NCBI GenBank assembly: GCA_024704765.1
Contig: JAKMXF010000353.1
Location: 68,925-132,924, forward strand
Reading direction: 5' to 3'
Source of the DNA: Oopsacas minuta
Lineage: Eukaryota; Animalia; Porifera
Length of the DNA: 64,000 nt
Below are positions 5,288-45,459 of this stretch, in pieces; position 1 is the first letter of the stretch; each line of letters opens with the position of its first letter. Both the position numbers and the translations under genes were made by a program. The notes beneath the pieces are model-generated. The model was given only the letters and a program-made list of their open reading frames with translations, did not search any database and had not been told where the DNA came from.

Positions 5288-5327
5288 TACAATCTAAATA
5301 CAGATTAGGTGTGAAAATATACATATA

Positions 5328-5452: not shown

Positions 5453-6262
5453 CTTTGAGATTTGTGCCACATTGCCTAATAGGCTGCCAAAAGCGACACA
5501 ATACACAGTTTGATTATCGTATAAACCTGAATATTCTCAAAATTGATGCTTCAACCACTTCACATGACCATACCGCGTAAACTATAACCTCAAAATGGCA
5601 AAAATGTAAGTCAGAGTGTCTTCTTCCCGAAAAAGTATGTCTCACGACACCCAGTGACACACATGGGGTCCATGACCACTTGACACCCTCTGAGCCCCTG
5701 GATTTGATAAAAAACCTTTCAATGATGTGTCCACCGAAAACGAGAATAACGCGCGATAACTTTGGAGGTTGAATGATTGACATAGTTTCACACTTAAGAC
5801 ACAATATTGATCTGCTAATGAATGCATATAATGTAATCCAATTATAGTGGCATCAAATGTGGCACAGTAGTGGCATGAATTCTTATTAGTTACTGTCTTT
5901 TTGGTAATTTGGCTTCCAGCTATTTATAGCATGATTATGGCAATATTAACCATCTGCCACGTCTGAACACAATTTGATAAGAAGTGTCAGATATTCATTC
6001 TACCCAATCGCCTCGTTTTTGGCGGGATATCTCACTTCTCGGAAGTAGACAACTTTAGGAAGTGGTGGAGTATATCATAAAGTGTCGCGCTGTAACCGAC
6101 ACAACTTAAGGGGTCTATGAACACTGGTCGTGAATCACTGGTGTACAAACAAGCAAGTAAATAAGACAGTTTGTCCAAGTAAAATGAAAAAATTTATACA
6201 AAGCATGCAAATGTAAAATCTAAATAAACACAACACTACTCAATTCTTATTTACAAAACAAG

Positions 6263-6718
6263 TCAAATCCAGACAGGATAATTCCTCTGCTTTGGTAGAA
6301 TACCAGTTTTGACTCCGGCGTCTTTCCATGCTAGTATGATCTTATCCAACACCTTTCTTGTAGCTTCCTGACACTCAATCGGGACAAATACCCCTGATTC
6401 ATATTCGCATACTCCATTCACAATCCTGAAAGCGTCCCCAACGACATTATCCGGTATGACTTCAAAATCAAACAAGTAATAAAACGCGAGACGATGAAGG
6501 TCCCCGCCAAATTTTTCGGGCCCTTCCATCTGCATAAGGGTATTTACGTCCATCAAGGCCGTGTAGCCTGATTTACACTTACGGCCGTTTAGAAACCACT
6601 GTTTCTGACCATTAATCTCATATACGATACATCCAACATATGAATTGTCCGAATTGAAGCTGTGAGAAGCACATGAGAGATGCATAGTGTCAAGTGGCTT
6701 TTCTGGGCATTCAGCCAT
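6263..6718 (-). CDS. Intronless 151-aa protein of unknown function
   Basis: Uninterrupted ATG-start ORF, GC higher than flanks, globular alpha/beta-like composition, TATA-like run just upstream (6727-6745). No family recognised. Confidence 0.65.
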   Translation of the reverse strand: MAECPEKPLDTMHLSCASHSFNSDNSYVGCIVYEINGQKQWFLNGRKCKSGYTALMDVNTLMQMEGPEKFGGDLHRLAFYYLFDFEVIPDNVVGDAFRIVNGVCEYESGVFVPIECQEATRKVLDKIILAWKDAGVKTGILPKQRNYPVWI

Positions 6719-6787
6719 TTGTATGTGTTATATATTTATATAAGCTATAAATATCAACAAGCTTATTTGTTTATTTAGAATATGTAA

Positions 6788-6850
6788 GGGATCACAGGAT
6801 CTCAAAATTGGTATCGCAGTCTATGGGAGTGTCCACAGTCCACTGAAAGT
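6788..6850 (+). mobile_element. hAT-MITE fragment
   Basis: CACAGGATCTCAAAATTGGTATCGCAGTCTA matches 61437-61470, which follows a Charlie-type TIR CAGCGGTTCCCAAACTGGGG. Confidence 0.6.
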
Positions 6851-7639
6851 GTTAAAAATGTCGGGATTAAAAGCTAAGTGGTCGTTATGTAGAAGTGGCA
6901 GCTGTAGACACATATTGCCAACACTGGAAATCGCCTTAGTATCCCAGGGTTATTTATACCCACATGCATATTCTAGGGAATTTGTCAATATTGGGCGATT
7001 CTTACTTCATTTTAGGGATCCCAAAATTACAGTTGGAACCGTTGAGGGTACACAGTTGAGTAACTTCAATGACGTACATTTGAATTTCGCCGTGTGTACA
7101 AAATCCTAACTGAAACCATTCACAAATACTCATTGAATTGTCTCATTAAAGTAAACAAATATGTTTGTTTACAACTTCACGTGTGAGACAATCTATTGTT
7201 TACAGTGCATAGTAGGAATTGTTGTCTTTAATTCTGATAATATGGACATAGCCAGAACTAAATATGGAAATATAAATGTCAATTACTAAATATAGTGGCA
7301 GTTTAGTGGCAGTTTAGTGGCATTATAAGAATCCTGTTCACAAATCTTAGAAGTGTACTATTACATACAGAAAACTTGTATTCGGGCGAGACGGTTGGTC
7401 ATCATTTCTTAGAGTAAGATATCGCTTCCATATTGAGTTAGAGTTTAAGAGACTTATGTGTCAATTTTCAGCTGGTGACGCCTGCCAAATCTGCAATCAA
7501 CCCCGATCAATACAGACCCTTGTTTATGACAAGAATCATGCATAAGTGATTAAAATTACTCTGATAAATACAGGTTGCTAGGGTCGGAATTATTAGCAGG
7601 CCCAACGTAATTATAAATATGCTAGCACTAATTTTTACA

Positions 7640-18700: not shown

Positions 18701-21700
18701 TTTCTGCTAGCTTGACTGCTTTGCGAGCATTGTTAGACATGTTCGTGTACGTCTCTGATAATTGGGTTACAATCTTGATCATCTCACCCTGATCCCCACC
18801 TGTCTTCCCTACAATAGAATACATATGGTATGTGAAAATGGTTCAGAACGTGTAACTAACACAAACGGCGTGCTAATGCTACACAGTTTCTGCCAAATCC
18901 CCAGTTTGTGAAGGTTAAACTGGACAATAAAATATATTTTCTCAAAATATATGAAAAAGTGTTAAAGCAAAGTTTGGACATTACCTAAACTCTCTTGTGC
19001 CAGCTTAGCAACCACTTTGGCACCTTGGAATATACCATCTTGACACTTAATATAATCTTCATCCTCCAATTCTCCTGGTATAGCCTCGTCCAATTTTTCT
19101 ACTGCTTTGAACATGTTTTCAGAAGCGTTGTAATATGGATCAGATGGTCTTTGTATTGTGAGTGTTAATTCGGTTATAGCTTGTGACATCGAGTCAGCTG
19201 ACTGATCTAGCTCCGCGCATGTGTCTTTGGCTGATTTGTTACCCCCAGATTCTTTGGCAGCCATTACTAGTTGCAGTGCGGCCTCTGTTAGAGTTTTTGA
19301 TTGTTCAAGGATCGATTGTTGGTCTGTTGATGAACTGACACGCGATGCCATACCGATTGAAAAGTTCGCGAAACTTGTAAAATGACTTGTCTAAAAGGTG
19401 TGACAATTATGAATATATGGACAGGAGCGGTTCAAGGATCAGGCAGACCCGTGGAACCCAAATGTGACACCTTTATAGCACGATAGATTCCACTTAATTG
19501 CCACAAAACGATCCGAAAAGTGTCCCCGGTCCACTAAAAATGGTTCAATAACCAACTTACAAGATTTGTAACTGAGTGTCCAAGGTTCTCGGCTTCTCCT
19601 TTAGCAGCTACTGTGACAGGGAGAATTAGCTCAGAGATCTGTTCGATAGTGTTCAACAGCTGATCTCTGAATCCAGCGAGAGAATGCTCCTGTCTAGGAG
19701 GCAGGTTTTGCTGCATACCCTCCAATGTGGCTCGATCTATGTCCCCAATGGTTCTATTCAAAATCCCTAAATGGTAAAGAGAGATTTATGAAATGTGTTT
19801 GTTAAAACCCTCCAATCTGATTGGTTTAACTTTAAAAATACTACAAGTATTTCCTGTCAATAGGCGCAATAGATTTCTCAGGACATCGAATAACCCGATT
19901 AGAATCTTAATTCTCCAAGAATGGTCGAATAGTTTTGGTGCATACCTGAAGCTTTTTGACATTCCTTTTGACCAGGTGAGTTGTTACGAATAGCATTAAC
20001 AAGATTCCTAATAGAATCTGTCAGAGATTTAGAATGTTGAGCTAATAACTGCCACAAATTCTGATCATCTGGATGTAACACCAATGTTTTAGAGGTTCCA
20101 ATTAAGCTTGTGGAATTAGAAACCATATTCCGACCTGACAAGAGAATTGGTACCATGGCGTCATGAGCCTAATTAGAGGAGTAAACATAAATATTTTCGT
20201 AAGACACCAGGGGTGGTCACATGGGAACCACGACCACCCTTTCGACAGTGAGTAACGAGTGAAGACCCCTCATGATTAATTCGTGTTCGCTTTCAGAGCC
20301 ATTTGACAGATTCAGGACTATATATCCATATTTGCGAAGAATAACTCCCACTGGGGAAATATTCGAGTGAATACGGTACAAACCTGTGGACTGATTCTTG
20401 CAGGGACACTAGCAAACTCCACTGAAGATGCAAAGGTAGTAAGAGCCTCTACAGCCTCAAGAAGAGGCTTAGTACTCTCGGAACATGCTTCTCTTTTTTC
20501 TGGAGTTAAGTTAGAGCTTAACTCTTTGATCTTCTTAACAAGATTACCAGTTGAGTTAGCGACCTATATGCACAGTATAAATGTACGAACAGGCGGAATA
20601 GTTTTTGCGTCAAATCGCACGAGAAAATGTATAGATAAATATATAAGATGTAATTACAGTTAGCTCCCGTTATATCGAAGCTTAAGGCGCTGCGATAATT
20701 ATTACTTACATCTTTAGCACTATTCATAAAGTGTTTCTTTGCAACAGGATTGATAGTTTTACTTGAAGCACTCTTACAAACTGTACACAGATGACTTGTG
20801 TGTTTAGCTATAGTAGTGGCACTAGCAAGGACCTGTTGCTGGCTACAGGCCGGGTTAAGAAGCGTCTGACACGCGAGGGAGATTGAGTGCTGTGCCCTGG
20901 CGAACTGTCCTTGGTCCACGAGCCCTGGGATTGCAAGATCGGATCGCGGATCGGATACACCGACGAGATAAGCCGCGTGTCCGGAGAATTCAGTTATAGT
21001 TATCACGCTAGAGGATAAGTTCCTAATGCTCTCACAGAATTTATCATGATTCCCTTCTCTAGTACTTGTTGATATACCAGTAACGGATTCGTTTAGAATA
21101 TTACTCTTGTCTATTACTGTCTCAAGACAATCGAAAAAGCTGGCCTCATTAACAGGTTCCTAATGAATACATACATTAAGAAATATCTCAAAATACAGCA
21201 TATGCTGACATTATTAGGGTAAATACAGTTAGTGGTGATGCGAGGGGGGAAATTCCTGAGACCGCTCCTGAAAACAGAGAGGACATTACAATGCAAATAC
21301 AAATCCATACACCCTACCAGAACCAATTGAATGTACATATGCTTAATTGCCAAAAACCTACGATCTTATTATCCTAAAATGAAAGGCGTGAAAATATACA
21401 CATGAGAAAAATTTTAAATGTCAGGTGTACACTAGAGGTCAATACGTGTGCACATGCCAAATTTAGTGTCTTAATCTCTAAAGGTGGGAACAGAAGATAG
21501 TACTATACTCAGAACAGTAAACATTGTCCTAGCCTGAGTATTTGACACCTTTCAATATCCCCAGGGGAGTGTTCAGAGGTCAAATCCATCCCAGGAAGGA
21601 AAGTACCTGTACCATAAACCCCTGTAATTCCTACCCCTTCCTCTTGGAAGGTGTTATGTGACAATTACAAGGTGTTACCGACACCAATACACACCTTAGG

Positions 21701-24700
21701 ATCATCCAATACTGATGCAACCATCTGTATATTCCTCAGAGCAGTATCACACTCCTTCTGACCAGGAGCAGAGCTTGTACAAACATTAATAAGAGTATTT
21801 ATACTGTCTGTCACCAGTCTAGCTGCTGCTGCTAGCATGTGTTTAGCATTGGGTGCGTTAGGATCTGCTGCTAAAGCTTTAGCGGCTAGCAATAGTTTTG
21901 TACTAAAATAGAAATATCAAGAATAATTACAGTCGACATAAGCGGGTATTTCGGTAGAACAGGAGTTGACTGAACCTTGATATAGATATTGTCTTGAGAT
22001 AGCCTAACATCTCTTGTTGACTCTCTGCATCAGAACTACAGCTAGCTAGCTGTAATCCTGCTATCAGTAGCTCTTCATACCTCTTGCTTATTAGAGTAGC
22101 AGATGCTGCTAGTTCCTCTGATGAACCTAAATGAAGTACACAAACAATTAGAGTTTGTAAACAACAAACAACAATAATATTTAGGGAGGTAGTGGACATT
22201 TTCACCCCATCTCCCTCAAGGAGAGGAGATAATTCGACAATGTTCTTACCTTTAGATCCAACGAGCTGGGAAGCAGCTGCATTCAAATTAGCAGCAGCTT
22301 GGCTCAGATTATTCTGTAGAGCCTGGTAAGACTGATCGGGCTTCTGTCCGAATATCGAACTTTTAGGATCGATCTGCTGACTGGCCCTAGCGATGTCCTT
22401 GAGGGCTTGGTCCACGTGTTTGGGGCCTGGTAGACAGGAGACAACTTGGTTGAGGGATTGTGACACACCGCGAGCTGCTTGTGCTAGTCGAGTTTGTTTA
22501 TTCGGCAAGTTTGGATTGTCTACTGCTGCTTTAGCCTCAGCTAAAAGTAAGTTAACAATATAACAAATGTGTGTGTGTACGTACAGTCAACTCCTGTTAT
22601 ATCTAAGCTCAAGAGACCGTGATAATCAGTTTGATAAAACAGATTAAATATATGCTACTTCGACGGTTTGTGACCATATTTGTACAATTTCACGCTTCGA
22701 TAACAGCTGGCATTTGAATATATCCGTGTTAGATGTGACGGGGAGTTGACAATATAATACAAGTTCGTTTCCCATCTGCCTAGTGTAACACTATTCGACG
22801 TTCCGAAACTCACCGATGAGTAAAACGCTTTGGTCCATAACCTTCTTCGCAGCTGACAGAAGTTCATCTTGGTGTTGTTTGTCCTGATCTCCGGCGGCCA
22901 CCCCCCTGACAGAGGAGGCAAGCACCCTCAGAGCATTAGCCGTATCTCTAGCTGCTATTCCTGTATATGATTCGTTGCCCTGATTTGCTGCAGTTAAGAG
23001 TTGGGCCATGCTAGCACCAACTGTTTTAGATGTGGATCCTAGTTCCTCAGCACATTCCTTTGCTGATTCCCCTGGCAACGGGAGGAGTTTGCCAGCTGCT
23101 GCAATTTTCTGTGCTTCAACTAGATCCTAATAAATAAACAAGTAAACAAGTAAACAAATAAATACACAAATGAATAAATGAACAAATGAATGAACAGTCG
23201 AAATAAACCATTCTAGAAATTTTGGAATAAAATACACAAGAAGTTTGAAAATATGATTAATACAATAACAACACTAATGAAAATCGCACAAATGTGTGAA
23301 ACCCCAGGTGCATAACTACACTCCATAGTGCACCCATAGTCCAAGAAAATTGGACCCATATATCATACGATACACAACAAAATCACTCACCTTTCCCAAT
23401 CCTCTGATAACATCCAGTGCAGAATCTATTTCAAGAGAACCACAAACCTCAGCAGCTCTCCCTACAGCCGTCCTCAGCTCGTGTATAGCAGAAGCCGTGG
23501 CTTTTGCGAAGTTACCCAGCTGCATAGCGGCTGCTTGATCCCCGATAGTAGGGACAGCTGCTTTGGAGGTGGATATCATCTTACCAGCTGGTTGTAACAT
23601 AGATTGACTAGCATTTATTAGACCTGTTGATTGTAAATAGGAAGGTTATATGTTTGTTTGTTTGTTTGTTTGTTTGTCACTCACCAAGTTGAGCAGAGGG
23701 ACTATCAGGATTAGACATAGTAGTCTTAACAGCCTGCACTAATCTTGCAATATTATCAGCTACAACTTTACAATTAGCAATCAGCTGTTGCTGACTAGCT
23801 GAATTCCTATTGGTTGCTTCAGCTCCCTGGGCAGCTGCTATACATTGTGTACATACAGCAGCTGTTTGTTTAGCTGCTACTTCTAGTTTACGAATAACCT
23901 TCCTTTTGATTGCCTAAAGGTGTGAATATAGTCATATATTATTGACTCCATATCTACGAAATCTTTAGCAACATTTTGAATTGTTTCCCAAAGGTGTGAT
24001 ATATGATTAATCATATGATGAACAATTATACCTGTGAGGCTACTGAAGTAGTGATACTCCTCAGATCCTCAGCAGCCTTCTTCAAAGCTTCTTGAGCATT
24101 GGGGTCCTTCAGGTTCCGAGCGGACTCACTCCCAGCGGATACCATTTTAGCAGTAGCTGCTGCCAGCTGTTTTGCTGCGTCTAGAAGTCTTTGACTAGCT
24201 GATGCATCGCTCTGTTTAGACGCATCCGTCTACATGGAAATAATAATACAAACATGGAAGGTGTGGTAATATGAGTAATTTATAGATACTCGTGTGCTGA
24301 CAATTCTTAGTATTTTCACCAGAGGAAACCTGTAGAGCTATAACACACCTGCAGAGCTTTAATGAGTTCGCTAGTAGCTTGAGCTAGTCCTTGTGCTTGT
24401 TTAACCATTTGTCCAGCGTTAGGAACGGAAGAGAAGAAGTTATCATGTGCTGCTAGTATCGCCTCACAGACCTCATCATATTGTCCACCCCCTTGTCCCA
24501 TACCATGACTGATATAGTCTATCAGCTCTTTGAGAGCGGTGCTAACATTGCCAGCGGATTTTCCTAGAGACCCGAGGGCTGCTTCATCTTGAGTACACCC
24601 CTTCTGAGCTAATTCTACTAGCTTATCTACACAATAGGCTACTGCCTTGCAGGCTTCTATTAGTTGTTCCTAGGTGATTGTATATGCATATAAATTGTTG

Positions 24701-27700
24701 GTTGTTTACTTGTTTGTGTACGTACAACTAACCTGACATAGAGGACTATCAATACAAGGTACCAACACCTTAGTACAAGTAACCAGCTGTTGTGTAGCAC
24801 TAGCAGTATCTTTAGCTCCCTGAACTACATCAGCTGTTAGACTGGGATCATCACACTTAGTAGCCACGTTCTTTGCCTGCCCAATCAATTCTGTAGTTGC
24901 TGTCCCCACATGTTTAGCAAGGGCTATTATCCGTTCTTGTGTATTGGGGTCCACTTCACTCTCTCCTACGTGTTTAAGGAGATTGCCCCCTCGGTTCCCG
25001 ACATCACCTGCGGTGTCTAGAAGAGGTTTGTGGTGTCCTGTGAAAGGAGGACGTGCCTAAGAAGGTGTGATGATGTTATTAATTCCATCAGTTTGTATAT
25101 TTTGATAAATTAAGTAGAATTCAGAAATATCTGGAACGACTCAAAAACTGAAATTTTGAGGAATAAAAAAATTGACCAGGAACAGAACCGTCAAATAAAA
25201 CGTAACACCCTCGGTGGGGTTCGAACCGGGGCATCACCTGTTGGAGGAATTTCCCAGTAGCACTAGATAAATCCTGTGCAGCCTTCAGTAGGTTAGAGCC
25301 ATCTTGTCCCTCATAGGCCAAGAGGGCTGCTATCATCCTCCCGCTCTTACTGAGCTCTGTAAGATTGCTTGTTATTGTAGTAACAGCTGATCCAACAGCT
25401 GTGTAGTCTACCTCTGATACCTCACGTGTCATTGTAAGTACAGATGATGTAGCAGCTAGAAAGTAATTGAATTAAATTCCCAACAACCTCCATAAAGATC
25501 ACAATTCGGACCATGGATCATGGAAAGGGAAGTGAACTCCACATTTTTAGGTAACACAGTATTGATGATTACCTAGCATTGCTGCTAACTGTGAATTCAC
25601 ATTCTGTTTAGAAACATCCATAGTGTTCTGCTTCCAAATAATAGAAGCGGAATCTCTTCCCAAAGCTGGAAGTTCACTGGCTGTGTTCAGACTAGCGTTA
25701 ACCTGAAAAGTATAAATAGAAGTTAAGTAGGCTCAGCAAAGAACCAACCAAACAAACAAACCTGGACCAGTTTGTCCATAGCTTTATCAATATTAGCAAT
25801 GAGGGCCTGTTGTGCTTGAGTGAGAGCTCCTGGATCAGCACCCCAGGGGGCCATATGTCCATAACCTGGGACCCTACTCGTCTGAAGGTGTTGGGGACCA
25901 TCCATATGACCCCGAGAAGGGTCCCCTCCTGTCCTAGAGAATCCAGCAACTCCATCTCCTGCCAGGTTCCTCTGATCTACGTGTTGCCTCGACTAGGTGT
26001 GAAATTATGTATAATATTTAGAAATATCAAATAGTCGTGAAGTCACATTGTCTTGTGGATTATTAATGCGGGTTCCACTGTATAATCCATGGTCCGGTGA
26101 GGCGATAAGGAGAGGGTAACTAACCTGATCAACTAACTGCATCTGTGTAGCCAGCCTTGGAGCAATATTATCCTCAATCATTGTAACTTCATCATCTACG
26201 TCATGTATAAACTTCTCTGAAGCTTTCTTCTTTTTAAGAATGATATCAATATACCCGGCGATCAGCTGGGAAATCGTCTCTCCCTCTGAGGTCTGTACGG
26301 AGTAAAATGAATCATGATATTCCCCAAAATCTAGTGTGAATGAGTTCGGAGATGCCGCCCATCTTTTTACAGTAGTCAGAGGCCAAGTTGTCATTACATC
26401 TTTAGTTATCTCGTCAACTCGCATTATGCTATCTCTTGTTATTCCTATAGAGGAGAATGTTTGTTTGTTTGTTTGTTTGTTATTAGATTATGTAAATTTT
26501 CGCTAGCTTGTTTACCAGTTTGTTACAGTGCCACTTACCCAACAATCTCGGTACTAATCTATTCCTAGCCTTCATCTTCTCTTTAACAAGAAAGAATGTG
26601 ACACCATAAGTTTTAAGCGCCCTACACAGCTGTATGAATCTAAATTTAGCATCCATTTCCTTTAGTCCGTAATAGTGCTTCCATTCCTGAGCTATTAGTC
26701 TCTCTATTGTCCTTGCTTTAGCGTATTCTTTGGGGAGTATGAAGGGGAGGTTACGGATTAAGTAAGCTGGTTTGTGCTTCTCTTCGTCATAGTCACCACT
26801 CATAATCTAGATAACATAATATAGAGTAAATCAGCTGTTCCCACCACCTGGTACACCCGGTTTCATCTCGATACAAGCGGAGTAAAAGCAGGGACAGTGG
26901 AACCTCGTTAATATGAACACCAACGGACCTTCGCTCAGAGTTCGTATTAACAGGCATAGCGAACTTTCTGTGTTAAATACATTAACGAGAGACACAGTAT
27001 ACACTTAGCTCTGATTTATATAAAAAAATTCCAATTACCTGCAGTTGTAGCGCAGCAAATTTGACTGCTTCATCCTTAGTACACGGATGTGTTCCTTCTA
27101 CAATATCCTTCTGACTCTGTACATATAGCAAGCCTAGCTGAACTGGGTCATTTCCATCAACATTTTTGTCAGTGAAATAATATCGTTTCCTCAAAACTAC
27201 AACTTCCTTCTCATCGACTCCCTGGTCTCTTAAACTCTTGTCAGAGCTCAGCCATTTGAGTTCATCGTCTGTGTGTAGTTTCTGTTTCATTTGTGCCATT
27301 TTCTTAGCGTTTCTCATTGAAGGACGTTCTTTCGTGAATTTACCTTCTTCATCCTAAAATTATAATTTTTCTGTAAAAGTTTGAGAGAAAATATACATAA
27401 ACAAGTGTTTCTATCTATTTATGATCTCAGCGGGGTTCACATAATCTCACCATTTGTGAGAGGGCTACGAGGTTGGGGGCCGGGGAAAATTGTTGGGGTG
27501 AGATTCTGGAATTTAAGGAAAGAATTGACGAATATATGAGCGATGGGAACTAAACTATTATACAATAAGCTGAATAAAATAATAAACAACAAACAAACAA
27601 GTAAATAAACAAACTTACCTTGACAATAAATGAGAACTCCTCAGGATTATTCAATCCATATCTGGCGCATACTGTCTTTACCAGATCCTTAACATTCAAA

Positions 27701-32947: not shown

Positions 32948-34435
32948 TTATAGTAAAATTACAAATATTTCAAGATCAACCCCATCATCTCTTATAAATT
33001 CTTCTTTTAAGATAGGGATATCAGCAATATCTTCACTGCTACCACCTTTCTGCTTTATTTCTATGATACCACTTTTAGATTCCCACGTGACATTGGGGAC
33101 GCTAGGGCTAAATATACGAAATATGAATTTGACTTTGACTTTATATAATTCCTGGCGTGGGTAACGAATACTTATTGAGCCATATTTTGAAACCCTTAAG
33201 GTGAAGTTAAACTCATCAACTTGAAATTCCTGCTGCTGGCCATTTTGGAATCGGTAAGAGAAATAATTGTAATAGCTGGAGGATCTACCATCAACCACCT
33301 TCTCAATTCTCCATTCTAATTTAGAGGAATTTGTGATGGAAAATAGCGCAGCTAATTGTCGTTCAATAGTTTCGTTCTGCTTGTTAATCATTTCGCTCTG
33401 TTGCATAACAATCTCTTCCATAGCACTGAGTTTCAATTCTGTGTGTTCAGTCCTCTTCTCCTTCAAATGTTGATTGAGTTTCTTCCTCTTGATTAGTCCT
33501 ACTTCACACTTGTACTTTATAAACGGACACTCTACCTTCTTCTCTACACACTCCTCCTCTAGGTGTTGTGCCATGTCCTCACGATAAGCCACTGTGCCAC
33601 ATTCTAGTTCACATGTCAGTCGTATCTTGGGACACTCTTCTAGATGGTTAGGCATAGCACAAGCTTTGAAATCTTTCTGGCAATGTTTACATGGTATTTT
33701 ACGTTGTACACACATTGTATTTACATGTATATCGAGTTCATCACGTGGTAGCTCTATTCCACATCCTAGTTTGCATTTCTCTACCACACGACCACAATCT
33801 TTCTTTAGGTGTTGTGCCATATCCTCGCGACACATCACTGTGCCACATTTTTGTTCACATGTCATTCGTATTTTCGGGCATTTTTTGAGGTGGTTAGACA
33901 TGTCACAAACTCTAAAATCTTTCTTGCAATGCTCACAAGATATTTGACGAAAATTACACTTCTCGCTGACATGTATTTTTAGCTCATGACGTGATAACAC
34001 TATCTTACATTCTAGTTTGCATTTCTCATAAACATGTCTACACACATCAAGATGGTTCTCACATTCTCCTAGTGTTCCTAGCCATTCACAACCACGCTTT
34101 TGTAAGGGACACGAGCATTTGAGAGAGAGGACTGTGTCCCTCACGTGTGTATTAGGACTGGTTTGCTCATAGCTACGATACGAGATGTATAATTCTTCAT
34201 GATTCCTACAACACTCACAAAATTGTTCCCCACTAGTTGATATGCAAGCCTCTCTTAGTATTCCCTTACAACGTTTACAAACAAGGAGTGCAATCTCTCT
34301 GTGCGTCAATTTTTCAGTTAGAATATCCTTCCTATAACCTCGATATTCTCCTTCCTTTCCTTGGACTCGACACAAATCCCTCCCTATTTCGGATACGAGT
34401 TGTTTTGTATTCCCTTCAACACGCTTAGTTGCCAT
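32948..34435 (-). CDS. TRAF-like protein 1 (degenerate RING, tandem TRAF Zn fingers, coiled coil, divergent MATH), 495 aa
   Basis: Intact single-exon ORF; CPL..RGCEWLG..ECENHL..C finger, repeated C..C...H...C fingers, MATH start LEWRI and end FIRDDGVDLEIFV. Confidence 0.9.
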   Translation of the reverse strand: MATKRVEGNTKQLVSEIGRDLCRVQGKEGEYRGYRKDILTEKLTHREIALLVCKRCKGILREACISTSGEQFCECCRNHEELYISYRSYEQTSPNTHVRDTVLSLKCSCPLQKRGCEWLGTLGECENHLDVCRHVYEKCKLECKIVLSRHELKIHVSEKCNFRQISCEHCKKDFRVCDMSNHLKKCPKIRMTCEQKCGTVMCREDMAQHLKKDCGRVVEKCKLGCGIELPRDELDIHVNTMCVQRKIPCKHCQKDFKACAMPNHLEECPKIRLTCELECGTVAYREDMAQHLEEECVEKKVECPFIKYKCEVGLIKRKKLNQHLKEKRTEHTELKLSAMEEIVMQQSEMINKQNETIERQLAALFSITNSSKLEWRIEKVVDGRSSSYYNYFSYRFQNGQQQEFQVDEFNFTLRVSKYGSISIRYPRQELYKVKVKFIFRIFSPSVPNVTWESKSGIIEIKQKGGSSEDIADIPILKEEFIRDDGVDLEIFVILL

Positions 34436-36985
34436 TTCTTACTTTCAATTCACTTTTTTTAACATAAATACATTATACTTAATATACCTCGGGGTATCAC
34501 ATGGAAATAGTAACCAGATACACACGTTAGTGCCTATACTATATATGTTACAACTCTATTTTTACCAATTATTCGTACGATAGAGAGCTCTCTAAAATAG
34601 GATTAACATAACTTTCGGGGCATAAAGCCAAAAATTCAGTTGTAGCATTTCCCCTTAATGTTATGGTATAGGGCGCCGAACGCGAACCTTCTAACAGTTT
34701 GAACTATCCCCCGGGTTCCGTGCATTGTGTGAAAATTAAATATTCCTTCAGCTTAGTTCTTCATTCTAATTTAGTGGTATACATTAGCTAAGTACTGAGA
34801 TGAATCTATCAGAGATGATGGGAATGATCTTGAAATATTATACAGGTGTCTAAAGGTGTGAAATATTCATATAGGTACAAGTAGATGTCACTAAGAGTAC
34901 ACATGCCAAATTTGGTGTCTTAATCTCTTAAGGTGTTAATAGTGAGCGAGTACATGTATACTATGTCAACCATTTAGAACTGAGCCACTGTACTAATAGT
35001 GTTTGTTGGTACAATAATAATTATCAATCTAAAATCTACATCGTTACTTGTGCTAAATTATTTACAAAATACAAATAATTCGAGTTCGATCTCGTCATCT
35101 CTGACAAAATCAGGCTTAACTTCAGATTTGGGGAATCTAACAACTTCCCTTTTGAGTTTAGAACTCTGATAATCTTTTTTGTTCACCTCTATCATTTCAC
35201 CTTTAAAATCCTTTGTGCCTTTTGGGTTGCTATGACAAACCAGACGAGCTACGAATTCAGCTATGAAAGGCCATTTTAGTGAAAAATAACCCCATCCATC
35301 CTTAGGGAGGAATAAAATCTGTATTGAATCAGCATCGCAAGAAAACTGAATTTCAAAATTATATCCATCAATTTGAGATTGTTTTTTAACTGTAGGATGA
35401 TTGGAACCCAATTTATAACATATGCTGTCTATTCGCCATTCTACTTTAGCAGCTCTAGCGATTGTAAATAAAGTTCGCTTCAAATCTCCAGCTTCAGTTT
35501 CTAACACTTGAACTGTGTGAGTAAGTAGTTTCACTTCATTACTCTGTTGCATAATAATCTCTTCCATAGCACTGAGTTTCAATTCTGTGTGTTCAGTCCT
35601 CTTCTCCTTCAAATGTTGATTGAGTTTCTTCCTCTTGATTAGTCCTACTTCACACTTGTACTTTATAAACGGACACTCTACCTTCTTCTCAACACACTCC
35701 TCCTCTAGGTGTTGTGCCATGTCCTCACGATAAGCCACTGTGCCACATTCTAGTTCACATGTCAGTCGTATCTTGGGACACTCTTCTAGATGGTTAGGCA
35801 TAGCACAAGCTTTGGAATCTTTCTGGCAATGTCTACATGGTATTTTACGTTGTACACACATTGTATTTACATGTATATCGAGTTCATCACGTGGTAGCTC
35901 TATTCCACATCCTAGTTTGCATTTCTCTACCACACGACCACAATCTTTCTTTAGGTGTTGTGCCATATCCTCGCGACACATCACTGTGCCACATTTTTGT
36001 TCACATGTCATTCGTATTTTCGGGCATTTTTTGAGGTGGTTAGACATGTCACAAACTCTGAAACCTTTCTTGCAATGCTCACAAGATATTTCACGAAATG
36101 TACACTCTTCTCTTATATGTATGGATAGCTCATGACATGGTAACACTATATCACATCCTAGTTTGCATTTCTCATGAACATGACTACACAAATGAAGATG
36201 GTTCTCACATTCTGCCAGAGTTCCTAGCCATTCACAACCACGCTTTTGTAAGGGACATGAGCACTTGAGTGAGTTGACAGTGTTCCTCACGTGTATATTC
36301 GGACTTATTTGTTCATACCTAGGGTATACGTTGCCAACTTCTTCATGATTCCTACAACACTCACAAAATTGTTCCCCACTAGTTGATATGCAAGCCTTCC
36401 TCATAATTCCCTTACAACGTTTACAAACCAAGAGTGCAATCTCTCTGTGTGTCAATTTTTCAGTTAGAATATCCTTCCTATAACCTCGGTATTCTCCTAC
36501 CTTTCCTTGGACTCGACACAAATCCCTCCCTATTTCAGCTACGAGTTGTTTTGTATTCCCTTCAACACGCTTAGTTGCCATTTCTTACTTTCGATTCACT
36601 TTTTTAACATAAATACATTATACTTAATATACCTCGGGGTATCACATGGAAATAGTAACCAGATACACACGTTAGTGCCTATACTATATATGTTACAACT
36701 CTATTTTTACCAAGTATTCATACGATAGAGAACTCTCTAAATAAGATGATCATAACTTTCGGGGCATAAAGCCAAAAATTCAGTTGTAGCATTTCCCCTT
36801 AATGTTATGGTATAGGGCGCCAGACGCGAACCTTCTAACAGCTTGAACTATCCCCCGAGTTCCGTGCATTGTGTGAAAACTAAATATTCCCTCGGCGTAA
36901 TTCTTCATTCTAATTTAGTGGTATACATTGGCTAAGTACTGAGATGAATCTATCAGAGATGATGGGAATGATCTTGAAATATTTC
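33398..36985. repeat. Tandem duplication, period about 2.15 kb (33398-34840 vs 35544-36985)
   Basis: Coding and upstream non-coding sequence align almost base for base. Confidence 0.9.
35058..36581 (-). CDS. TRAF-like protein 2, 507 aa
   Basis: Near-identical to locus 1 up to MQQS; different MATH with LKWPF and DFVRDDEIELELFV. Confidence 0.9.
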   Translation of the reverse strand: MATKRVEGNTKQLVAEIGRDLCRVQGKVGEYRGYRKDILTEKLTHREIALLVCKRCKGIMRKACISTSGEQFCECCRNHEEVGNVYPRYEQISPNIHVRNTVNSLKCSCPLQKRGCEWLGTLAECENHLHLCSHVHEKCKLGCDIVLPCHELSIHIREECTFREISCEHCKKGFRVCDMSNHLKKCPKIRMTCEQKCGTVMCREDMAQHLKKDCGRVVEKCKLGCGIELPRDELDIHVNTMCVQRKIPCRHCQKDSKACAMPNHLEECPKIRLTCELECGTVAYREDMAQHLEEECVEKKVECPFIKYKCEVGLIKRKKLNQHLKEKRTEHTELKLSAMEEIIMQQSNEVKLLTHTVQVLETEAGDLKRTLFTIARAAKVEWRIDSICYKLGSNHPTVKKQSQIDGYNFEIQFSCDADSIQILFLPKDGWGYFSLKWPFIAEFVARLVCHSNPKGTKDFKGEMIEVNKKDYQSSKLKREVVRFPKSEVKPDFVRDDEIELELFVFCK

Positions 36986-37209: not shown

Positions 37210-38491
37210 TTAAAGTAAAGTTACAAATATTTCAAGATCTATATCTCTGGTGAATTCTTTTCTTGCAGGGATTGTAGCAATAACATAACTTTCGCTACCT
37301 TTTGCTTTATTTCTATTATATTACTTTTAGATTCCCAAATGACATCAGGCTTGCTAGGACTAATAATACGAAATATAAATTTGACTTTGACTTTAGATAA
37401 TTCCTGTCGCGGGTAATTGATATATGTATATTGAGCCATGAATTAGCTGTAAAATAAAGTTAAACCTATCAACTTGAAATTGTTGGGAAGTTGAGTGATT
37501 GTAATCTGTCATAGAATTTACCACGTTTTGAATTCTCCATTCTAACTTAGTGGTATTGGTGATGGAAAGTAGCGTTTTAAATTGTCCGTTCTGTTTAGTA
37601 ATCATTTCGCTCTGTTGCATAACAATCTCTTCCATAGCACTGAGTTTCAATTCTGTGTGTTCAGTCCTCTTCTCCTCCAAATGTTGATTGAGTTCCTTCC
37701 TCTTGATTAGTCCTACTTCACACTTGTACTTTATAAACGGACACTCTACCTTCTTCTCTACACACTCCTTCTCTAGGTGTCGTGCTATGTCCTCACGATA
37801 AGCCACTGTGCCACATCCTAGTTCACATGATAGTGGCATTTTTTGCACTTTTTATTGTGGTAAAACATTTCACACGCTTTGAAATCTATGTGACAGTACT
37901 CACAAGGTATCATTCGTCGTACGCACTCATCATTCACATGCATACCGAGCTCATCACGAGGTAGCTCTATTCTACATCCTAGTTTGCAATGCTCTATCAC
38001 ACGACGACAAAGAGATATCACAAACTTTGAAATCATGCTTACAATGCTCACAGGGTATTTTACGATACAAACACGTTTCTTTCATATCAATATTGAGCTC
38101 ATGACGTGGTAACCCTATTTCATATCCTAGTTTGCATTTCTCATGAACATAGCCGCACACATTGAGATGGTTCTCACATTCTCCTAGTGTTCCAAGCCAT
38201 TCACAACCTCGATTATACGAGGGACACGAAGACTTGAGTGAGAGGACTGTTTTACTTACATGTGCATTTTGGTGTTTCTGTTCCCCCTTTCTGGTACAAC
38301 AGGAACAAAATTCATTGACAACGCTTACAAACCAGGAGTGCAAGCACTCTTTCTGACATATTTTCAGTTATAATATCTGTTCTATAACCTAGAGATTTTC
38401 CTCCCTCTGCTCTGACTAAATACAATTCCCTCGCTATTTCGGGCACGTTCTCATCTGGTTCTTGATAAATTTCAACACGCTTAGCTGCCAT
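37210..38491 (-). pseudogene. TRAF-like locus 3, disrupted
   Basis: ATG at 38491; deletion in RING gives CKRCQ-TGA; further frameshifts split the fingers and MATH across ORFs 37972-38343, 37818-38051, 37393-37848, 37239-37439. Confidence 0.85.
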
Positions 38492-39453
38492 TTCTTACAA
38501 AAATACACTTCTTGGTATATTGTTAATTATTCGCCCAGGGTATCTCATGAAAATAGTAACCAGATACTTCAGTTCCTAGTCTACTATATTCCCATATATT
38601 TATATGATTATATCGCTATATACATTTTCAGTGTTTGTCTATCACCCCGATGATCGTTCCTGGAGAATGAACACAAATTAGAATGAAAATACGCCATACA
38701 ACATCGAAAAGGTACTATCCCAAAAATAACTAATCTAATTATCATTTTGTAGACCAATAAAACCTATATCAACAGTTTGGGGCATTGTTTAAACAATGTC
38801 CAGGAAAAAAACTGATCAACACAATAATAGACGGGCTACACACATAAGATTATTCTCAAACTAGTAATACTCAAAGAGGTGTTCATCGTGGGAACGATCA
38901 TCTCCCGTTAGATAAACTCAATTTTCATGGGTAGATGAATTTGTTGACATTATTGATTCTAAGCTTGGAAGGTATTTATGTAGATCAGACGTATATACTA
39001 GTAAAATACACCTTGTAGCTGAATTACATTGATTATATGGGGAAATTATGACAATATTTGTGGGTTGCCATATCAGATGCAGGAAGTGGAGCTGAATCAT
39101 GTTTTCACTAACAGTAACAGAGGTCTAATATAATAACGTCTAAGTGATGAGCTGATTAACCGTAGCTAATAAATACTCTACAAATTCTGTATATTTGTAT
39201 GCATTAACAGATAACCTCTGATGCTGTGAATTTATCCACAGCCTTAAGTGCCTGATTACAAACACAACGTGATACTCACTTATCTCTAACTAATTATTAA
39301 TTCATTGATTGATTAGATATGTTGAAATAGCGGATTTGTCTTTTGGAGATGATTCACAATTATTATTATTATTATGCCAGTCATTACGATATCTCATTAC
39401 AATCTTTATGTATTGAATTGATTTATAACCAAGCAATGAATGTATTATAAGAA

Positions 39454-41406
39454 ATGGCAACTGAATCCGTGGAATATCTCGAACCCGAGATAGGTAAATC
39501 TTTGTGTCGAGTCAGAAGACAAAATGGAAATTTGGGTGGTTATAGGACAGATCTTTTGGTTGAAAATATTTCAAAGACAGATATGGCTGCATTGGTTTGT
39601 AAGCGTTGCCAAGGAATCTTAAGAAAGGCATATTTTTCGGCTACTAGCGGCGAGCATTTTTGTAAATGTTGTAAGAATTTGCTGGAACCAGCAGAGCCAA
39701 ACGAACAAGTGAGGAAAATAGTCCACTCACTGAAAAGCTCGTGTCCTTTATACGACAGAGGTTGTGAAGGAATAGGAAAGCTGGGAAAATGTGCGAAGCA
39801 TCTCACTATATGTGAGTTTGTTTATGAACAATGCGAACTAGGCTGTGAGATAGTGTTACCACGTCATGAGCTCAAAATACATATGAGAGAACATTGTGCA
39901 CAACGTGAAATTACCTGTGAGTATTGTGATCAATATTTCAAAGTGTGTGATATGGGTTACCATATGAATCAGTGTGACAAAATGCAACTAACAAGTGAGC
40001 TGGGATGTGACACAGCGATGTGTCGTGAGGATATGGCACAACACTTAGAGAAATATTGTCGTCGTGTGATAGAGCATTGCAAACTAGGTTGTGGAATTGA
40101 GTTACCACGTGATGAGCTCGAGATGCATATGAATAATGAGTGTGTACAACATATGATACCTTGTAAGCATTGTAAGAGAGATTTCAAAGTTTGTGACATG
40201 CGTAACCATTTGGAAGAGTGCCCAAAAATGCTACTAAATTGTGAACTAAAATGTGGCACAGTGATGTGTCGCGAGGATATGCCACATCATTTAGAGAAAG
40301 ATTGTGGTCGTGTGATAGAGCATTGCAAACTATACTGTGGAATAGTGTTACCACGTGAGGAACTGAAAATTCATATGAAGGAAAAGTGTGAATATCGTAA
40401 AGTAGCATGTGAGGATTGCAAGAAAGATTTCGAATTTTGTGATATGTTAATACACCAACCAAAATGTCCAAAGGTTCGACTGAAATGTAAAGAAGGATGT
40501 GGCACAACCGTGGATCGTGAGGATATGGCACAACATCTAGAGAAAGATTGTGGTCGTGTGGTAAGGAGATGCAAACTAAGATATGGAAAAATAGTACCAC
40601 GTGATGAACTCAATATTCATATGAAGGAAAAGTGTGTACAACGTATGATACCTTGTGAGCATTGTAACATAGATTTCAAAGCTTGTAACATGTCTAACCA
40701 CAATAAAAAGTGCAAAAAAATGCCACTATCTTGTGAATTAGGATGTGGCACAACGGTGAGTCGCGAGAAAATGGCAAAACACATAGGGGAAGAATGTGTA
40801 GAGAAGAAGGTAGAGTGTCCGTTTATAAAGTACAAGTGTGAAGTAGGACTAATCAAGAGGAAGAAACTCAATCAACATTTGGAGGAGAAGAGGACTGAAC
40901 ACACAGAATTGAAACTCAGTGCTATGGAAGAGATTGTTATGCAACAGAGCGAAATGATTAGAAAATTTTCTAACAGATTTACAGCACTTTGTTCCATCAC
41001 CAAAACCACTAAACTCAAATGGAAAATTGGAAATATAAGAAATAATTTATCCTCCAACCTTTCTTTAACTTCTCCACTATATGAAGTTGCTGGATTCAAA
41101 TTCAATTTCAATTTATCGAGTTATGCCTCTATAAATATTCATTTCCCAAACCAGGAAACGTCCAAATTTGCTTCTGGCAAACTAAACTGGCCTTTCAAAG
41201 CAAAATTTCTATTTCGTTTGATTTGTCATAACGATCCAAATGGCACATTGGAATATAGAAGCAGAATTGAAATAAAGCAGAAAGATTGCAATAAATCTGG
41301 ATACATCAGTGATCCTGTTGCTCAAATAAATGCTGAACATGCAACTAATATGTACTATATGATAGATGGAGGGATTGATCTGGAGATATTTGTAATTTTA
41401 CAATAA
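39454..41406 (+). CDS. TRAF-like protein 4, 650 aa, four Zn-finger triplets
   Basis: Intact single-exon ORF; MATH with LKWKI, LNWPFKAKFLFRLICH, DGGIDLEIFVILQ. Confidence 0.9.
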   Translation: MATESVEYLEPEIGKSLCRVRRQNGNLGGYRTDLLVENISKTDMAALVCKRCQGILRKAYFSATSGEHFCKCCKNLLEPAEPNEQVRKIVHSLKSSCPLYDRGCEGIGKLGKCAKHLTICEFVYEQCELGCEIVLPRHELKIHMREHCAQREITCEYCDQYFKVCDMGYHMNQCDKMQLTSELGCDTAMCREDMAQHLEKYCRRVIEHCKLGCGIELPRDELEMHMNNECVQHMIPCKHCKRDFKVCDMRNHLEECPKMLLNCELKCGTVMCREDMPHHLEKDCGRVIEHCKLYCGIVLPREELKIHMKEKCEYRKVACEDCKKDFEFCDMLIHQPKCPKVRLKCKEGCGTTVDREDMAQHLEKDCGRVVRRCKLRYGKIVPRDELNIHMKEKCVQRMIPCEHCNIDFKACNMSNHNKKCKKMPLSCELGCGTTVSREKMAKHIGEECVEKKVECPFIKYKCEVGLIKRKKLNQHLEEKRTEHTELKLSAMEEIVMQQSEMIRKFSNRFTALCSITKTTKLKWKIGNIRNNLSSNLSLTSPLYEVAGFKFNFNLSSYASINIHFPNQETSKFASGKLNWPFKAKFLFRLICHNDPNGTLEYRSRIEIKQKDCNKSGYISDPVAQINAEHATNMYYMIDGGIDLEIFVILQ

Positions 41407-41712
41407 ACGTATTTGTTTAGTGAAAATACCATCAAAATATTTGTTGTAATTTGTGAATATTTCTTATGTGTATTACTATAATAATTCGCTAATTATTTTA
41501 GGATGTTTATTAGGTGTTAAATAAGTATTCGCCCAAATGTGAGCCATTAAGTCGTTCTATTCTGACCAAGTAAACCGATTACATGATACCCCATAGACTA
41601 TGAGGGTCAGGTATCCAACTAGATTTATCCAGCATTGCTAGGCACTAAAGTAAATATAATGTTACCCCAAGTATTTATAATCAAGAAATGATTTGATAAT
41701 GAATTTTATGAA

Positions 41713-43024
41713 ATGGCTGAGAAGTCCTTTGAAAATGAATCAAATGATCCAGAATTATTAATAGACGCAAAACAACTATTCCTACCCCAGATAGGAAGGG
41801 AGTTGTGTCGAGTCAGAGATTCGGACGTAATAGGCCCTAGGCACTACTCTGACATTGGAAGGGCAGTTGACAAGTTTAGTTCCCAATCTTCAAACGACAA
41901 CCGGATAGTTCACTTAAGCAAACAGGGTTCGGGAGAAGGACACGTAATCCGAGCAGATTCCCTTAATATAGGAGGGAGCCTAGGATGCAGATATAAATCA
42001 GACAGAGGAGAATTTCGAGGTTATAGGCAAGATATCCTAAAAGAAAATTTATCCAAAAGAGAGAGTACATTCCTGTTATGTAATCGTTGTAAAGGAATTA
42101 TGAGAGAGGCCTGCATATCATCTAACGGGGAACAATTTCGTGAGTGTTGTAGGAAACTCAGGCCACGTGACCTGTATGAATATACTAGCCTGAATACACA
42201 CGTCAGGAACACAATCCTCTCACTCAAGTGCTCATGTACTTCACACTTGTGCTTTATAAACGGACACTCTATCATCTTTTCAACACACTCCTCCTTTAGG
42301 TGTCGGGCCATGTCCTCACGACAAGCCACTGTGCCACATCCTAGTTCACATTTTAGTGGCATTGCGGGACACTTTCAATCAACATTTGGAGGAGAAGAGG
42401 ACTGAACACACAGAATTAAAACTCAGTGCTTTGGAAGAGATTGTTATGCAACAGTGCGAAATGATTAATGAACAGGGTGGAATTAATGATAAACAAAACG
42501 AATTGATATCGAAACAGGGCAAGGAGATAGAGGAACAAAAAGATTTGATTTCGAAACAGAAAGAGACATTAAATGAACAAAAGGATTTGAATTCTAAACA
42601 TAGAGAAAGGATTACAACACTACGTGCCGTCACTAAAACCACAATTGAAGCATGGAGAATTGAAAACTTGCGAGGTATTTTATTCTTGAACTCACCACCA
42701 TCTTATAAACCTTTTGAAGTTGTTGGTTTTAAACTCAATGTAGGCTTTTCAGATACTGTCTCAATAAGTATGCATTTCCCACCTCAGGTAGTCTCTCAAA
42801 CTAATAAACTAGAATGGCCTTTCAGGGCAATATTTGCAATTCGTTTGCTATGTCATATCAAGCCTTCTGATACCTGGGAATTCAGAAGTAAATTGATTGA
42901 AGTAAAGCATAAAGATTATACTAAGAAGCAGTACAGTTGTAAAATAGTTGAAATACCTGCAAATAATGGAATCTTTCTCAGAGATGGAGGAATTGATCTT
43001 CAAATATTTGTAATTTTACAATAA
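41713..43024 (+). pseudogene. TRAF-like locus 5: Zn-finger array deleted and last fingers inverted; possibly rescued by splicing
   Basis: Forward N-terminus to LKCSC (42237), antisense finger sequence about 42238-42374 (ORF 42021-42362), then open coiled coil plus MATH to 43024. Confidence 0.75.
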
Positions 43025-43338
43025 ATGAAGTTGTTTACTGGAAATACCATCCAATATTTGTTATAATATTTACAATATTTTGTTTGCTAATTTTATATAT
43101 TATCAAATTTTATTGTTGTTTGAAATAATTACATATTTCCTCAACTATGAGCGAAGAAAATCTCGTACGATTCCGGCCAAGTGAACTGATTGTACTTTCC
43201 GAATAGACTCTGGGTAACGGGCCGTTTAACCTTATGAATTTATCCACAGCCTTAAGTGTCTGATTACAAACTCAACATGATACTCTAAATAATGAATATG
43301 TTCATTGATAGATTAGATATTTTGAAATGGCGGATTTG

Positions 43339-43521: not shown

Positions 43522-45459
43522 ATGGCTGAGAAGTCTATTGGAGGGGCACCGGAATTATTAATAGACCTAGAACAACCACTCCTACCAGAGATAGGAAGAG
43601 AATTATGTCGAGTCAGAGTCAGAGATTCAGACGTTAAAGGCAAACAGGGTTCGGGAGAAGCACACGTAATCCGAACAGATTCCCTAAATATGGGAGGGAT
43701 CCCAGGGACCACAGGATATAAATCAGACAGAGAAGAATTTCGAGGTTATGGGAGAGATATTCTAACAGAAAATTTAGCGGAAAGAGAGAGTACATTCCTG
43801 TTATGTAATCGTTGTAAAGGAATTATGAGAGAGGCTTGCATATCAACTAACGGAGACAATTTTGTGAGTGTTGTAGGAAACGTGAAGAATTTTACAACTT
43901 GTATGAAAGCTATGAACAAACATTCCGAATACACATGTGAGGAACACAATCCTCTCTCTCAAGTGCTCGTGTCCTTTACTAGAACGGGGCTGTGAGTGGC
44001 TAGGAACACTAGGAGAATGTGAGAACCATCTTGATGTGTGTAGTCATGTTCATGAGAAATGTAAACTATACTGTGGAATAGTGTTACCACGTGAGGAACT
44101 GAAAATTCATATGAAGGAAAAGTGTGAATATCGTAAAGTAGCATGTGAGGATTGCAAGAAAGATTTCGAATTTTGTGATATGTTAATACACCAACCAAAA
44201 TGTCCAAAGGTTCGACTGAAATGTAAAGAAGGATGTGGCACAACCGTGGATCGTGAGGATATGGCACAACATCTAGAGAAAGATTGTGGTCGTGTGGTAG
44301 AGAAATGCAAACTAGGATGTGGAAAAATAGTACCACATGATGAGCTCAATATGCATGTGAATGAAAAGTGTTTACAACGAATGATTACATGTGAGTACTG
44401 TCATATAGATTTCAAAGCTTGTGATATGTTTCAGCACCAGGCAAATGTCCAAAGGTTCGACTGAAATGTGTAAAAGGATGTGACACAACATTGGATCGCG
44501 AGAAAATGGCACATCATCTAGAGAAAGATTGTGGCCGTGTGATAGAGAATTGCAAACTAGGATGTGGAAAGAAGCTACCACGTGATGAGCTCAATATGCA
44601 TGTGAATGAAAAGTGTTTAGAACGTATAATACCATGTGGGTACTGTCATATAGATTTCAAAGCTTATAACAAGTCTTACCACAATAAAAAGTGCAAAAAA
44701 ATGCCAATATCATGTGAACTAGGATGTGGCATACTGGTGTGTCGTGAGGACATGGCACGACACATAGAGGAGGAATGTGTAGAGAAGAAGGTAGAGTGTC
44801 CGTTTATACAGTACAAGTGTGAAGTAGGACTAATCAAGAGGAAGGAACTCAATCAACATTTGGAGGAGAAGAGGACTGAACACACAGAATTGAAACTCAG
44901 TGCTATGGAAGAGATTGTTGTGCAACAGAGCGAAATGATTAATAAAAAGAACGAAAGAATTAATACACAGGATAAAATGATTACTAAACAGGATAAAATG
45001 ATTACTAAACAGGATAAAATGATTGCCAAACAGGATAAAATGATTGCTAAACAGAGTGAAAGAATTGCTATACAGAACGAACAACTTAAAGCGCTATTTT
45101 CCAACGCCAATACCATTAAGTTAGAATGAAGAATTCCAAACGTGGTAAAATTTATAAAATATTGCACTCCCTCAACTTCTCAACAATTTCGAGTTGATAG
45201 GTTTAACTTTACTTTAGAGCTAATATATGGCTCAATATACATTCATTACCCGCGACAGAAATTATCTAAAGTCAAAGTACATTTTATATTTCGTATTATT
45301 AGCCCTAGCAACTCTGATGCCATTTGGGAAACTAAAAGTAATATAATAGTAATAAAGCAGAAAAGTGGCGAAAGATATGGTATTGCTAAAATCCCTCCAA
45401 GAGAAGAATTCATCAGAGATAATGGTATAGATCTTGAAATATTTGTAACTTTACTCTAA
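43522..45459 (+). pseudogene. TRAF-like locus 6, disrupted
   Basis: Frameshifts near 43855 and 44440; TGG-to-TGA at 45127-45129 (LEW becomes LE*); MATH continues to 45459. Confidence 0.85.
44968..45051 (+). repeat. Four 21-bp tandem units encoding QDKMI(T/A)K heptads
   Basis: CAGGATAAAATGATT(AC/GC)(T/C)AAA x4. Confidence 0.9.

Follow-up and report, generated by a model that had tools for sequence, protein, structure and literature searches.

The window analyzed, a 64,000-nucleotide stretch of the genome of the glass sponge Oopsacas minuta, holds six TRAF-like loci in tandem:

Locus 1: 32948-34435, minus strand, 495 aa
Locus 2: 35058-36581, minus strand, 507 aa
Locus 3: approximately 37393-38491, minus strand, frameshifted
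Locus 4: 39454-41406, plus strand, 650 aa
Locus 5: 41713-43024, plus strand, rearranged TRAF-like copy
Locus 6: 43522-45459, plus strand, frameshifted

Each of loci 1, 2, and 4 is one uninterrupted ORF, identical in NCBI, in which Pfam detects three to seven TRAF-type zinc fingers and neither a RING nor a MATH domain. Dozens more copies are present in the genome, on contigs C343, C325, C334, C193, C33, and C293, several of them riddled with frameshifts. The family is large, fast-evolving, and intronless, and its members combine a degenerate half-RING, TRAF zinc fingers, a coiled coil, and a MATH domain. All six loci of the window carry, 70-240 nt ahead of the start codon, a CATG(T)GATAC(C/T)C-like motif (34490-34530, 36640-36680, 38540-38580, 41585-41600, 39255-39270, and 43265-43280); it may be a shared promoter element, but by itself is too short for significance. 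There was no indication of promoter loss at locus 5, where a CATGATACCCC-type motif, again too short for significance, is kept as upstream of loci 1-3. The AATAAA at the stop codon is kept in locus 5.

Inversion and deletion at locus 5

The following features of locus 5 are referred to below:

41713-42235, plus strand: N-terminal coding part, 174 codons plus 1 nt, ending in SLKCS(C); exon 1 in both intron models
42139-42141, plus strand: Cys to Arg replacement (CGT) at the first Cys of an FCxCC motif
42236-42237, plus strand: junction 1 and proposed GT donor, from side-by-side alignment with paralogues in both orientations
42237-42374, minus strand: inverted fragment of the last TRAF-type zinc finger, 46 codons, antisense to the gene, from the flip in blastn orientation
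42236-42356, plus strand: 121-nt candidate intron of the first-pass annotation, CAT/GTACTT ... TTCACATTTTAG/TG (slashes mark splice sites), in frame
42236-42299, plus strand: 64-nt intron of the public gene model LOD99_9211 threaded on the window, acceptor TCAACACACTCCTCCTTTAG/GT
41713-42405, plus strand: 230-aa ORF of the unspliced reading, made up of the N-terminal part and 56 further residues, TGA at 42403-42405 (ORF list)
42357-43024, plus strand: coiled coil plus MATH/TRAF-C half (ORF, AlphaFold2, Foldseek)
42375-42475, plus strand: conserved start of the coiled coil, NQHLEEKRTEHTELKLSA... (blastn, junction alignment, copy comparison)

When 41401-43300 was compared with the window by blastn, 41918-42244 proved colinear with locus 6 in the same orientation (84% identity), 42237-42363/42373 matched, in opposite orientation, the last finger in each of the five paralogues (80-91%), and 42375-42518 was back in the orientation of the paralogues (84-97%). 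The zinc-finger array is gone from locus 5, and a 138-nt piece of its last finger is present back to front. Indeed, the antisense translation of 42237-42374, KCPAMPLKCELGCGTVACREDMARHLKEECVEKMIECPFIKHKCEV, is free of stops and is matched by Pfam zf-TRAF (E=3.6e-7). The first-pass annotation had placed the last finger in antisense where the rest of the array is deleted; the blastn flip and the zf-TRAF match bear this out and set the extent at 42237-42374. Homology of the N-terminal part ends past SLKCSC, and ~0.5-1 kb of fingers, corresponding to 166-328 finger codons of intact copies, is absent between this point and the inverted fragment. At the second junction, 22 nt of linker are absent.

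Alignment of the junctions with the paralogues showed that G42236 and T42237 derive from an ancestral TGT Cys codon. Junction 1 reads TGCTCATG[T]ACTTCAC, in which T42237, shared with the inverted fragment, is the 1-nt microhomology; junction 2 lies at ~42373-42378, has a microhomology of 2-4 nt, and abuts the 5' edge of the conserved coiled-coil segment. The proposal that the junction creates the GT is thus incorrect, since this GT belongs to the TGT Cys codon of every paralogue (TCATGTCC) and the only new bases, ACTTCA, come after it. No forward copy of the inverted fragment is left in locus 5, and the event was therefore an inversion with flanking deletions rather than an inverted duplication. 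A template switch, also proposed at first pass, is possible, but the lack of a forward copy and a microhomology of only 1-4 nt lend it no specific support. We conclude that locus 5 carries an inversion together with deletions on its flanks. Both belong to one complex rearrangement that turned round the last-finger piece and removed the fingers on one side and the linker on the other.

Elsewhere in the 61.46-Mb, 365-contig genome no copy with the locus 5 arrangement, and no site spanning either junction, was found. Comparison of 19 copies of the inverted fragment revealed two private changes in its 138 nt, which suggests either that the event is recent or that the fragment has been homogenized by gene conversion; in both cases, open flanking frames would be expected without selection. 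A near-identical source for the inverted piece was not found, the best matches being locus 3 and a C325 copy (91%). An inversion in situ would be simpler than capture from a minus-strand neighbor, for or against which these matches do not speak.

The first ~100 nt of the coiled coil (NQHLEEKRTEHTELKLSAMEEIVMQQSEM) show 95-97% DNA identity across paralogues (examples of homologues: 40868-40960, 37591-37691, and 33384-33477), compared with 70-85% in the flanks, a pattern that points to gene conversion or to constraint on the DNA or RNA itself. At C343:1472-1900, two copies meet head to head in this conserved segment around one N (~1687), which may reflect a genuine palindrome formed by rearrangement at the same hot spot or else an unresolved assembly join. 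In C325:272000-281000, we observed two heavily frameshifted copies (3245-4630 and 5260-7113). One C325 copy is the nearest relative of the N-terminal half of locus 5 and has the same 28-codon insertion, and the other is one of the two nearest relatives of the MATH half. Locus 5 itself may be a recombinant of two lineages.

Candidate introns, splice sites, and public gene models

According to the first-pass annotation, removal of 42236-42356 would join the two halves of locus 5 in frame. Recalculation confirmed the arithmetic: 41713-42235 (523 nt) and 42357-43024 (668 nt) add up to 1191 nt, that is, one frame of 396 codons plus a stop, with a phase-1 donor and the junction string TGCTCAT/TGGCATTG at 42235/42357. 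The downstream MATH frame is likewise free of stops as claimed, being open from 42260 to the stop at 43022-43024 (ORF list). However, 406 other GT..AG pairs in locus 5 give one open frame as do 42236-42356 and 42236-42299, and among these 408 pairs 42236-42356 ranks 26th by summed splice-site score. Because so many pairs yield an open frame, the in-frame property of 42236-42356 is no more than chance.

Locus 5 has already been modeled publicly. LOD99_9211 (P0113; an entry with one member, NCBI only) is a 415-aa protein called "hypothetical protein" in NCBI and "MATH domain-containing protein" in UniRef, without a Pfam domain. Exact threading on the window placed its exons at 41713-42235 and 42300-43021 around a 64-nt intron (junction 42235/42300, TGCTCAT/GTGTCGGG). 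The model shares donor 42236 with the 121-nt candidate and differs from it in the acceptor, at 42299 (score 9.4) instead of 42356 (4.1), so that 19 antisense-derived residues, VGPCPHDKPLCHILVHILV, are retained. The finger-less spliced reading of locus 5 is hence already in databases, and the inverted-finger nature of the predicted intron is absent from the record. The public annotation was made with BRAKER 1.9/AUGUSTUS 3.2.3 with TopHat RNA-seq hints. For locus 6 it gives P0021, "Ankyrin, TRAF-type zinc finger protein" (503 aa, 43522-45129), which spans two frameshifts by introns of 52 nt (43992-44043) and 44 nt (44391-44434) and ends ahead of the MATH part. Both introns are shorter than any intron inferred in the talin gene (see below), and their acceptors are poor (-1.3 and 0.8). 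With P0021 the gene finder has probably patched over a pseudogene, and because the same annotation patches locus 6 in this way, LOD99_9211 is weak evidence of splicing.

As a reference for splice-site quality, we used 25 introns inferred in the talin gene (15.7-28 kb, minus strand) from its open-frame segments by GT..AG and frame constraints with self-trained matrices, a heuristic set from one gene only; ranks were obtained by leave-one-out scoring against these 25 sites. The inferred introns look canonical, with G at donor position -1 in 23 of 25 and at +5 in 16 of 25, and are 56-535 nt long. The donor of locus 5, CAT/GTACTTC, scores 2.4 with the heuristic matrix, below 23 of the 25 talin donors. 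It has neither G-1 nor G+5, a combination found in just one talin donor, and its score is equaled or bettered by 20% of the GTs between 39 and 46 kb. Acceptor 42356 (4.1) falls below 23 of the 25 talin acceptors and has a competing AG 12 nt upstream. Acceptor 42299 (9.4), by the same heuristic matrix, exceeds 18 of the 25 and is mid-range.

The sequence TTCACATTTTAG does end at 42356, and the likeness to acceptors of the window noted at first pass is fair: 6 of the 25 talin acceptors carry CACAC or ACACC before the AG. The exact 13-mer TTCACACCTTTAG occurs at 23914-23926 on the minus strand, in an inferred talin acceptor, and at 34850-34862, also on the minus strand. Allowing up to two mismatches, the window has 13 occurrences where 2.4 would be expected. 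Many talin acceptors have (T)CACACC 5-10 nt before the AG (e.g., 23914-23926, 19391-19405, and 25057-25072), and this may be a branch-site-like motif unusually near the 3' splice site in Oopsacas minuta.

The acceptor-like sites of locus 5 are also found in copies that have undergone no inversion. Read in antisense, 8 of the 19 fragment copies have the acceptor corresponding to 42299, ACACACTCCTCCT(C/T)TAG/GT, with scores of 8.2-9.4, and the AG of 42356 has a counterpart in 14 of 19, in two of them within the identical 22-mer. Judged by these copies, the acceptor-like tracts arise inherently from reading the last finger in antisense; the pyrimidine-rich tracts ending in TAG correspond to its Glu, Cys, Val, and Lys codons. 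No improvement of splice sites since the inversion is visible among the 19 copies, nor is any later change required to account for the sites. Since splice-like motifs pre-exist in the paralogues, the "intronisation" step that the first-pass annotation placed after the inversion has no visible counterpart in the sequence.

Long ORFs of 96-138 aa without a stop run along the finger arrays on the strands opposite to the genes (39969-40600, 33594-33947, and 35740-36135), owing to the mix of Cys, His, Glu, and Lys codons. This explains why the inverted fragment in locus 5 reads through. The rearrangement breaks the frame, and the unspliced product would be the 230-aa ORF, whose 56-residue tail consists of antisense finger and an out-of-frame stretch. 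The exact 230-aa sequence is not present in the public protein collection.

Domain content and constraint in the two halves

The N-terminal part of locus 5 is homologous to locus 6, loci 1 and 2, and the C343/C325 copies, and contains a Cys-rich, degenerate half-RING-like motif. Pfam found no RING in any family member compared and no hit at all in the N-terminal part of locus 5. A profile comparison with the RING and first finger of TRAF2/TRAF6 gave a weak, sub-threshold match (E 0.02-0.03) in which the second RING half is absent. AlphaFold2 modeling of the Cys-rich region (locus 1, 150 aa, seven-sequence alignment) gave a pLDDT of 35. For the coiled coil plus MATH half (42359-43021), AlphaFold2 predicted a helix (2-89) and an eight-stranded beta sandwich with a mean pLDDT of 76, and the top 50 Foldseek matches were all MATH/TRAF domains (USP7, TRAF4, SPOP, TRAF6, and TRAF1; E ~2e-4, TM 0.5-0.58 normalized to target); Pfam MATH models remained below threshold on this half. 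Sense zf-TRAF fingers are absent from locus 5, compared with three to seven stretches in intact paralogues (E 1e-17 to 4e-36, Pfam). Hence, of the domain content ascribed to the 396-aa product at first pass, the coiled coil and MATH domain are found at the level of the fold and fingers are indeed lacking, but the half-RING comes down to a weak, sub-threshold profile match.

Both halves are free of stops and frameshifts (174 codons in the N-terminal and 222 in the C-terminal half), and all N-terminal indels of locus 5 relative to its relatives are in frame. The first Cys of the FCxCC motif is kept in 14 other copies reading through the motif, the C325 pseudogene and one FCEFC variant among them; of the copies compared, only locus 5 has FRECC. 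In the weak profile match to the TRAF2/TRAF6 RINGs, the lost Cys falls on a TRAF2 RING ligand (E 0.02) and may thus have bound zinc. In addition, the N-terminal half has four private departures at otherwise invariant columns (0-2 in intact copies), and its locus-5-specific changes are 6 synonymous and 30 non-synonymous, compared with 6 and 11 in an intact relative. These counts indicate relaxed constraint on the N-terminal half of locus 5. The C-terminal half shows two departures, both conservative, at columns invariant in seven other copies (0-4 in intact copies).

The nearest relatives of the MATH half are the intact gene C343:6417-8216 and a C325 pseudogene (77-79% DNA identity). The ratio of non-synonymous to synonymous change, put forward at first pass as a check on the MATH domain of locus 5, was calculated against C343:6417-8216 and gave dS 0.13, dN 0.17, and ω 1.3. 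When the branches were separated with locus 4 as outgroup, locus 5 had 2 synonymous and 15 non-synonymous changes, but the branch of the intact gene, with 4 and 20, was equally rich in non-synonymous change. Across the family, ω is ~0.6-1.3 overall and 0.65-0.68 in the C-terminal domain even at larger distances. Because intact paralogues too have ω near or above 1, dN/dS cannot separate function from decay at locus 5.

Pseudogene, spliced gene, or artifact

On balance we lean, by a little, toward locus 5 being a recent unprocessed pseudogene produced by inversion plus deletion. Measured against functional paralogues, the lesion is disabling: the fingers are deleted, the frame is shifted, and the ORF is cut to 230 aa. 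The family is, moreover, rich in pseudogenes, among them loci 3 and 6 and the two C325 copies near the halves of locus 5. An evolutionarily recent event would have left both flanking halves open, and the in-frame GT..AG pairs would be fortuitous, the GT being a Cys codon common to all paralogues; one such pair would then have been used by the ab initio gene finder to build the 415-aa model. Locus 5 resembles unprocessed pseudogenes of tandem arrays in having a structural lesion, adjoining frameshifted copies, an excess of non-synonymous change, and a lost Cys; it differs from them in its open flanking ORFs and undamaged MATH domain, as expected of a very young pseudogene or of a gene that is not a pseudogene. 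The open halves, the undamaged MATH half, and the retained upstream motif and AATAAA run counter to the pseudogene reading, as does acceptor 42299, which is as good as real ones; the 64-nt intron could have read support.

That the inverted fragment is removed as a new spliceosomal intron to yield a finger-less protein of 415 or 396 aa is, in our estimate, rather unlikely. Both versions of the intron restore one frame, LOD99_9211 has the corresponding structure and comes from a pipeline that took RNA-seq intron hints, acceptor 42299 combines its score with a CACAC...TTTAG pattern that six of the 25 talin acceptors share, and the intron length is inside the range of the inferred talin introns. 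The intact flanking ORFs and MATH domain and the coiled-coil start nearly identical to that of paralogues fit as well. Against this stand a very weak donor, a family otherwise without introns (loci 1, 2, and 4 are annotated as single ORFs), and the mini-introns that the same annotation puts into pseudogene locus 6, and no transcript-derived protein of locus 5 was found in the protein collection; the loss of an invariant Cys in exon 1 and the unimproved splice sites point the same way. If splicing does take place, the odds favor the 64-nt intron over the 121-nt one by about three to one. The finger-less product could enter trimers of paralogues via the near-identical coiled coil and modulate them. 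The locus might also be expressed unspliced, as the 230-aa N-terminal ORF and/or a 192-aa coiled coil plus MATH protein, from the first in-frame ATG of that half (42446), acting as a decoy subunit. The two ORFs are open and the coiled coil plus MATH half is predicted to be structurally sound, but the downstream ORF lies behind an upstream ORF of 230 codons with no sign of an internal promoter, neither exact product was found in the public collection, and nothing sets this reading apart from a young pseudogene; we give it little credence. An assembly artifact in a repeat-rich tandem family, hiding a true locus with a normal finger array, is similarly improbable. The finger arrays are internally repetitive and common to oppositely oriented paralogues, and the head-to-head junction at C343:1472-1900 has its N exactly in the conserved coiled-coil segment. 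However, the window is without any N, the assembly (365 contigs; hybrid SPAdes, then SSPACE with -n 15, Pilon, and GapFiller) was polished with Illumina reads (PMC10280926), a microhomology of 1-4 nt is too short for merging in a k-mer graph (k>=21) or by SSPACE -n 15 overlap, and long-read chimeras do not typically take the form of a 138-nt inverted piece bounded by two clean junctions.

The intronization model (Irimia et al., 2008; Catania and Lynch, 2008, PMC2586383) predicts weak splice sites and a transitional phase of alternative splicing (PMC2586383). Locus 5 is like it in having a frame-disrupting exonic stretch between fortuitous weak GT and AG sites, the loss of which would repair the ORF, and differs in that the stretch is an inverted exon fragment rather than a mutated exon and that its length need not be a multiple of three. 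That a frame-breaking exonic stretch can become an intron via latent weak sites is an established hypothesis (PMC2586383), and locus 5 would be a new and unusually clear candidate rather than a new kind. It is unlikely that the 138-nt inverted exon fragment is indeed spliced out via the GT of a Cys codon and an AG of the antisense finger, which would make it a datable intron birth in a family otherwise free of introns and turn a TRAF-like protein with many fingers into a finger-less coiled coil plus MATH subunit able to enter trimers of its paralogues.

TRAF1 is a vertebrate TRAF without a RING that keeps the coiled coil and TRAF-C/MATH domain and can hetero-oligomerize with full-length TRAFs; it is an old, conserved gene and retains one zinc finger. 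The predicted product of locus 5 is similar in that it keeps the coiled coil and TRAF-C/MATH domain without the catalytic and adaptor N-terminal modules. Unlike TRAF1, it would have no finger and a damaged half-RING-like motif, and would come from a lineage-specific rearranged copy. The "TRAF1-like regulator" of the first-pass annotation is speculation.

If the splicing reading is true, locus 5 would represent a rare and mechanistically transparent intron gain, in which an inversion broke the frame and latent splice signals rescued it, and a dominant-negative-like TRAF would have arisen in one step within a rapidly diversifying immune-type family of an early-branching animal. If locus 5 is not spliced, the gene finder has probably patched over pseudogenes in both LOD99_9211 and the model of locus 6, and such patched models matter for counts of TRAF/MATH genes in sponge genomes.
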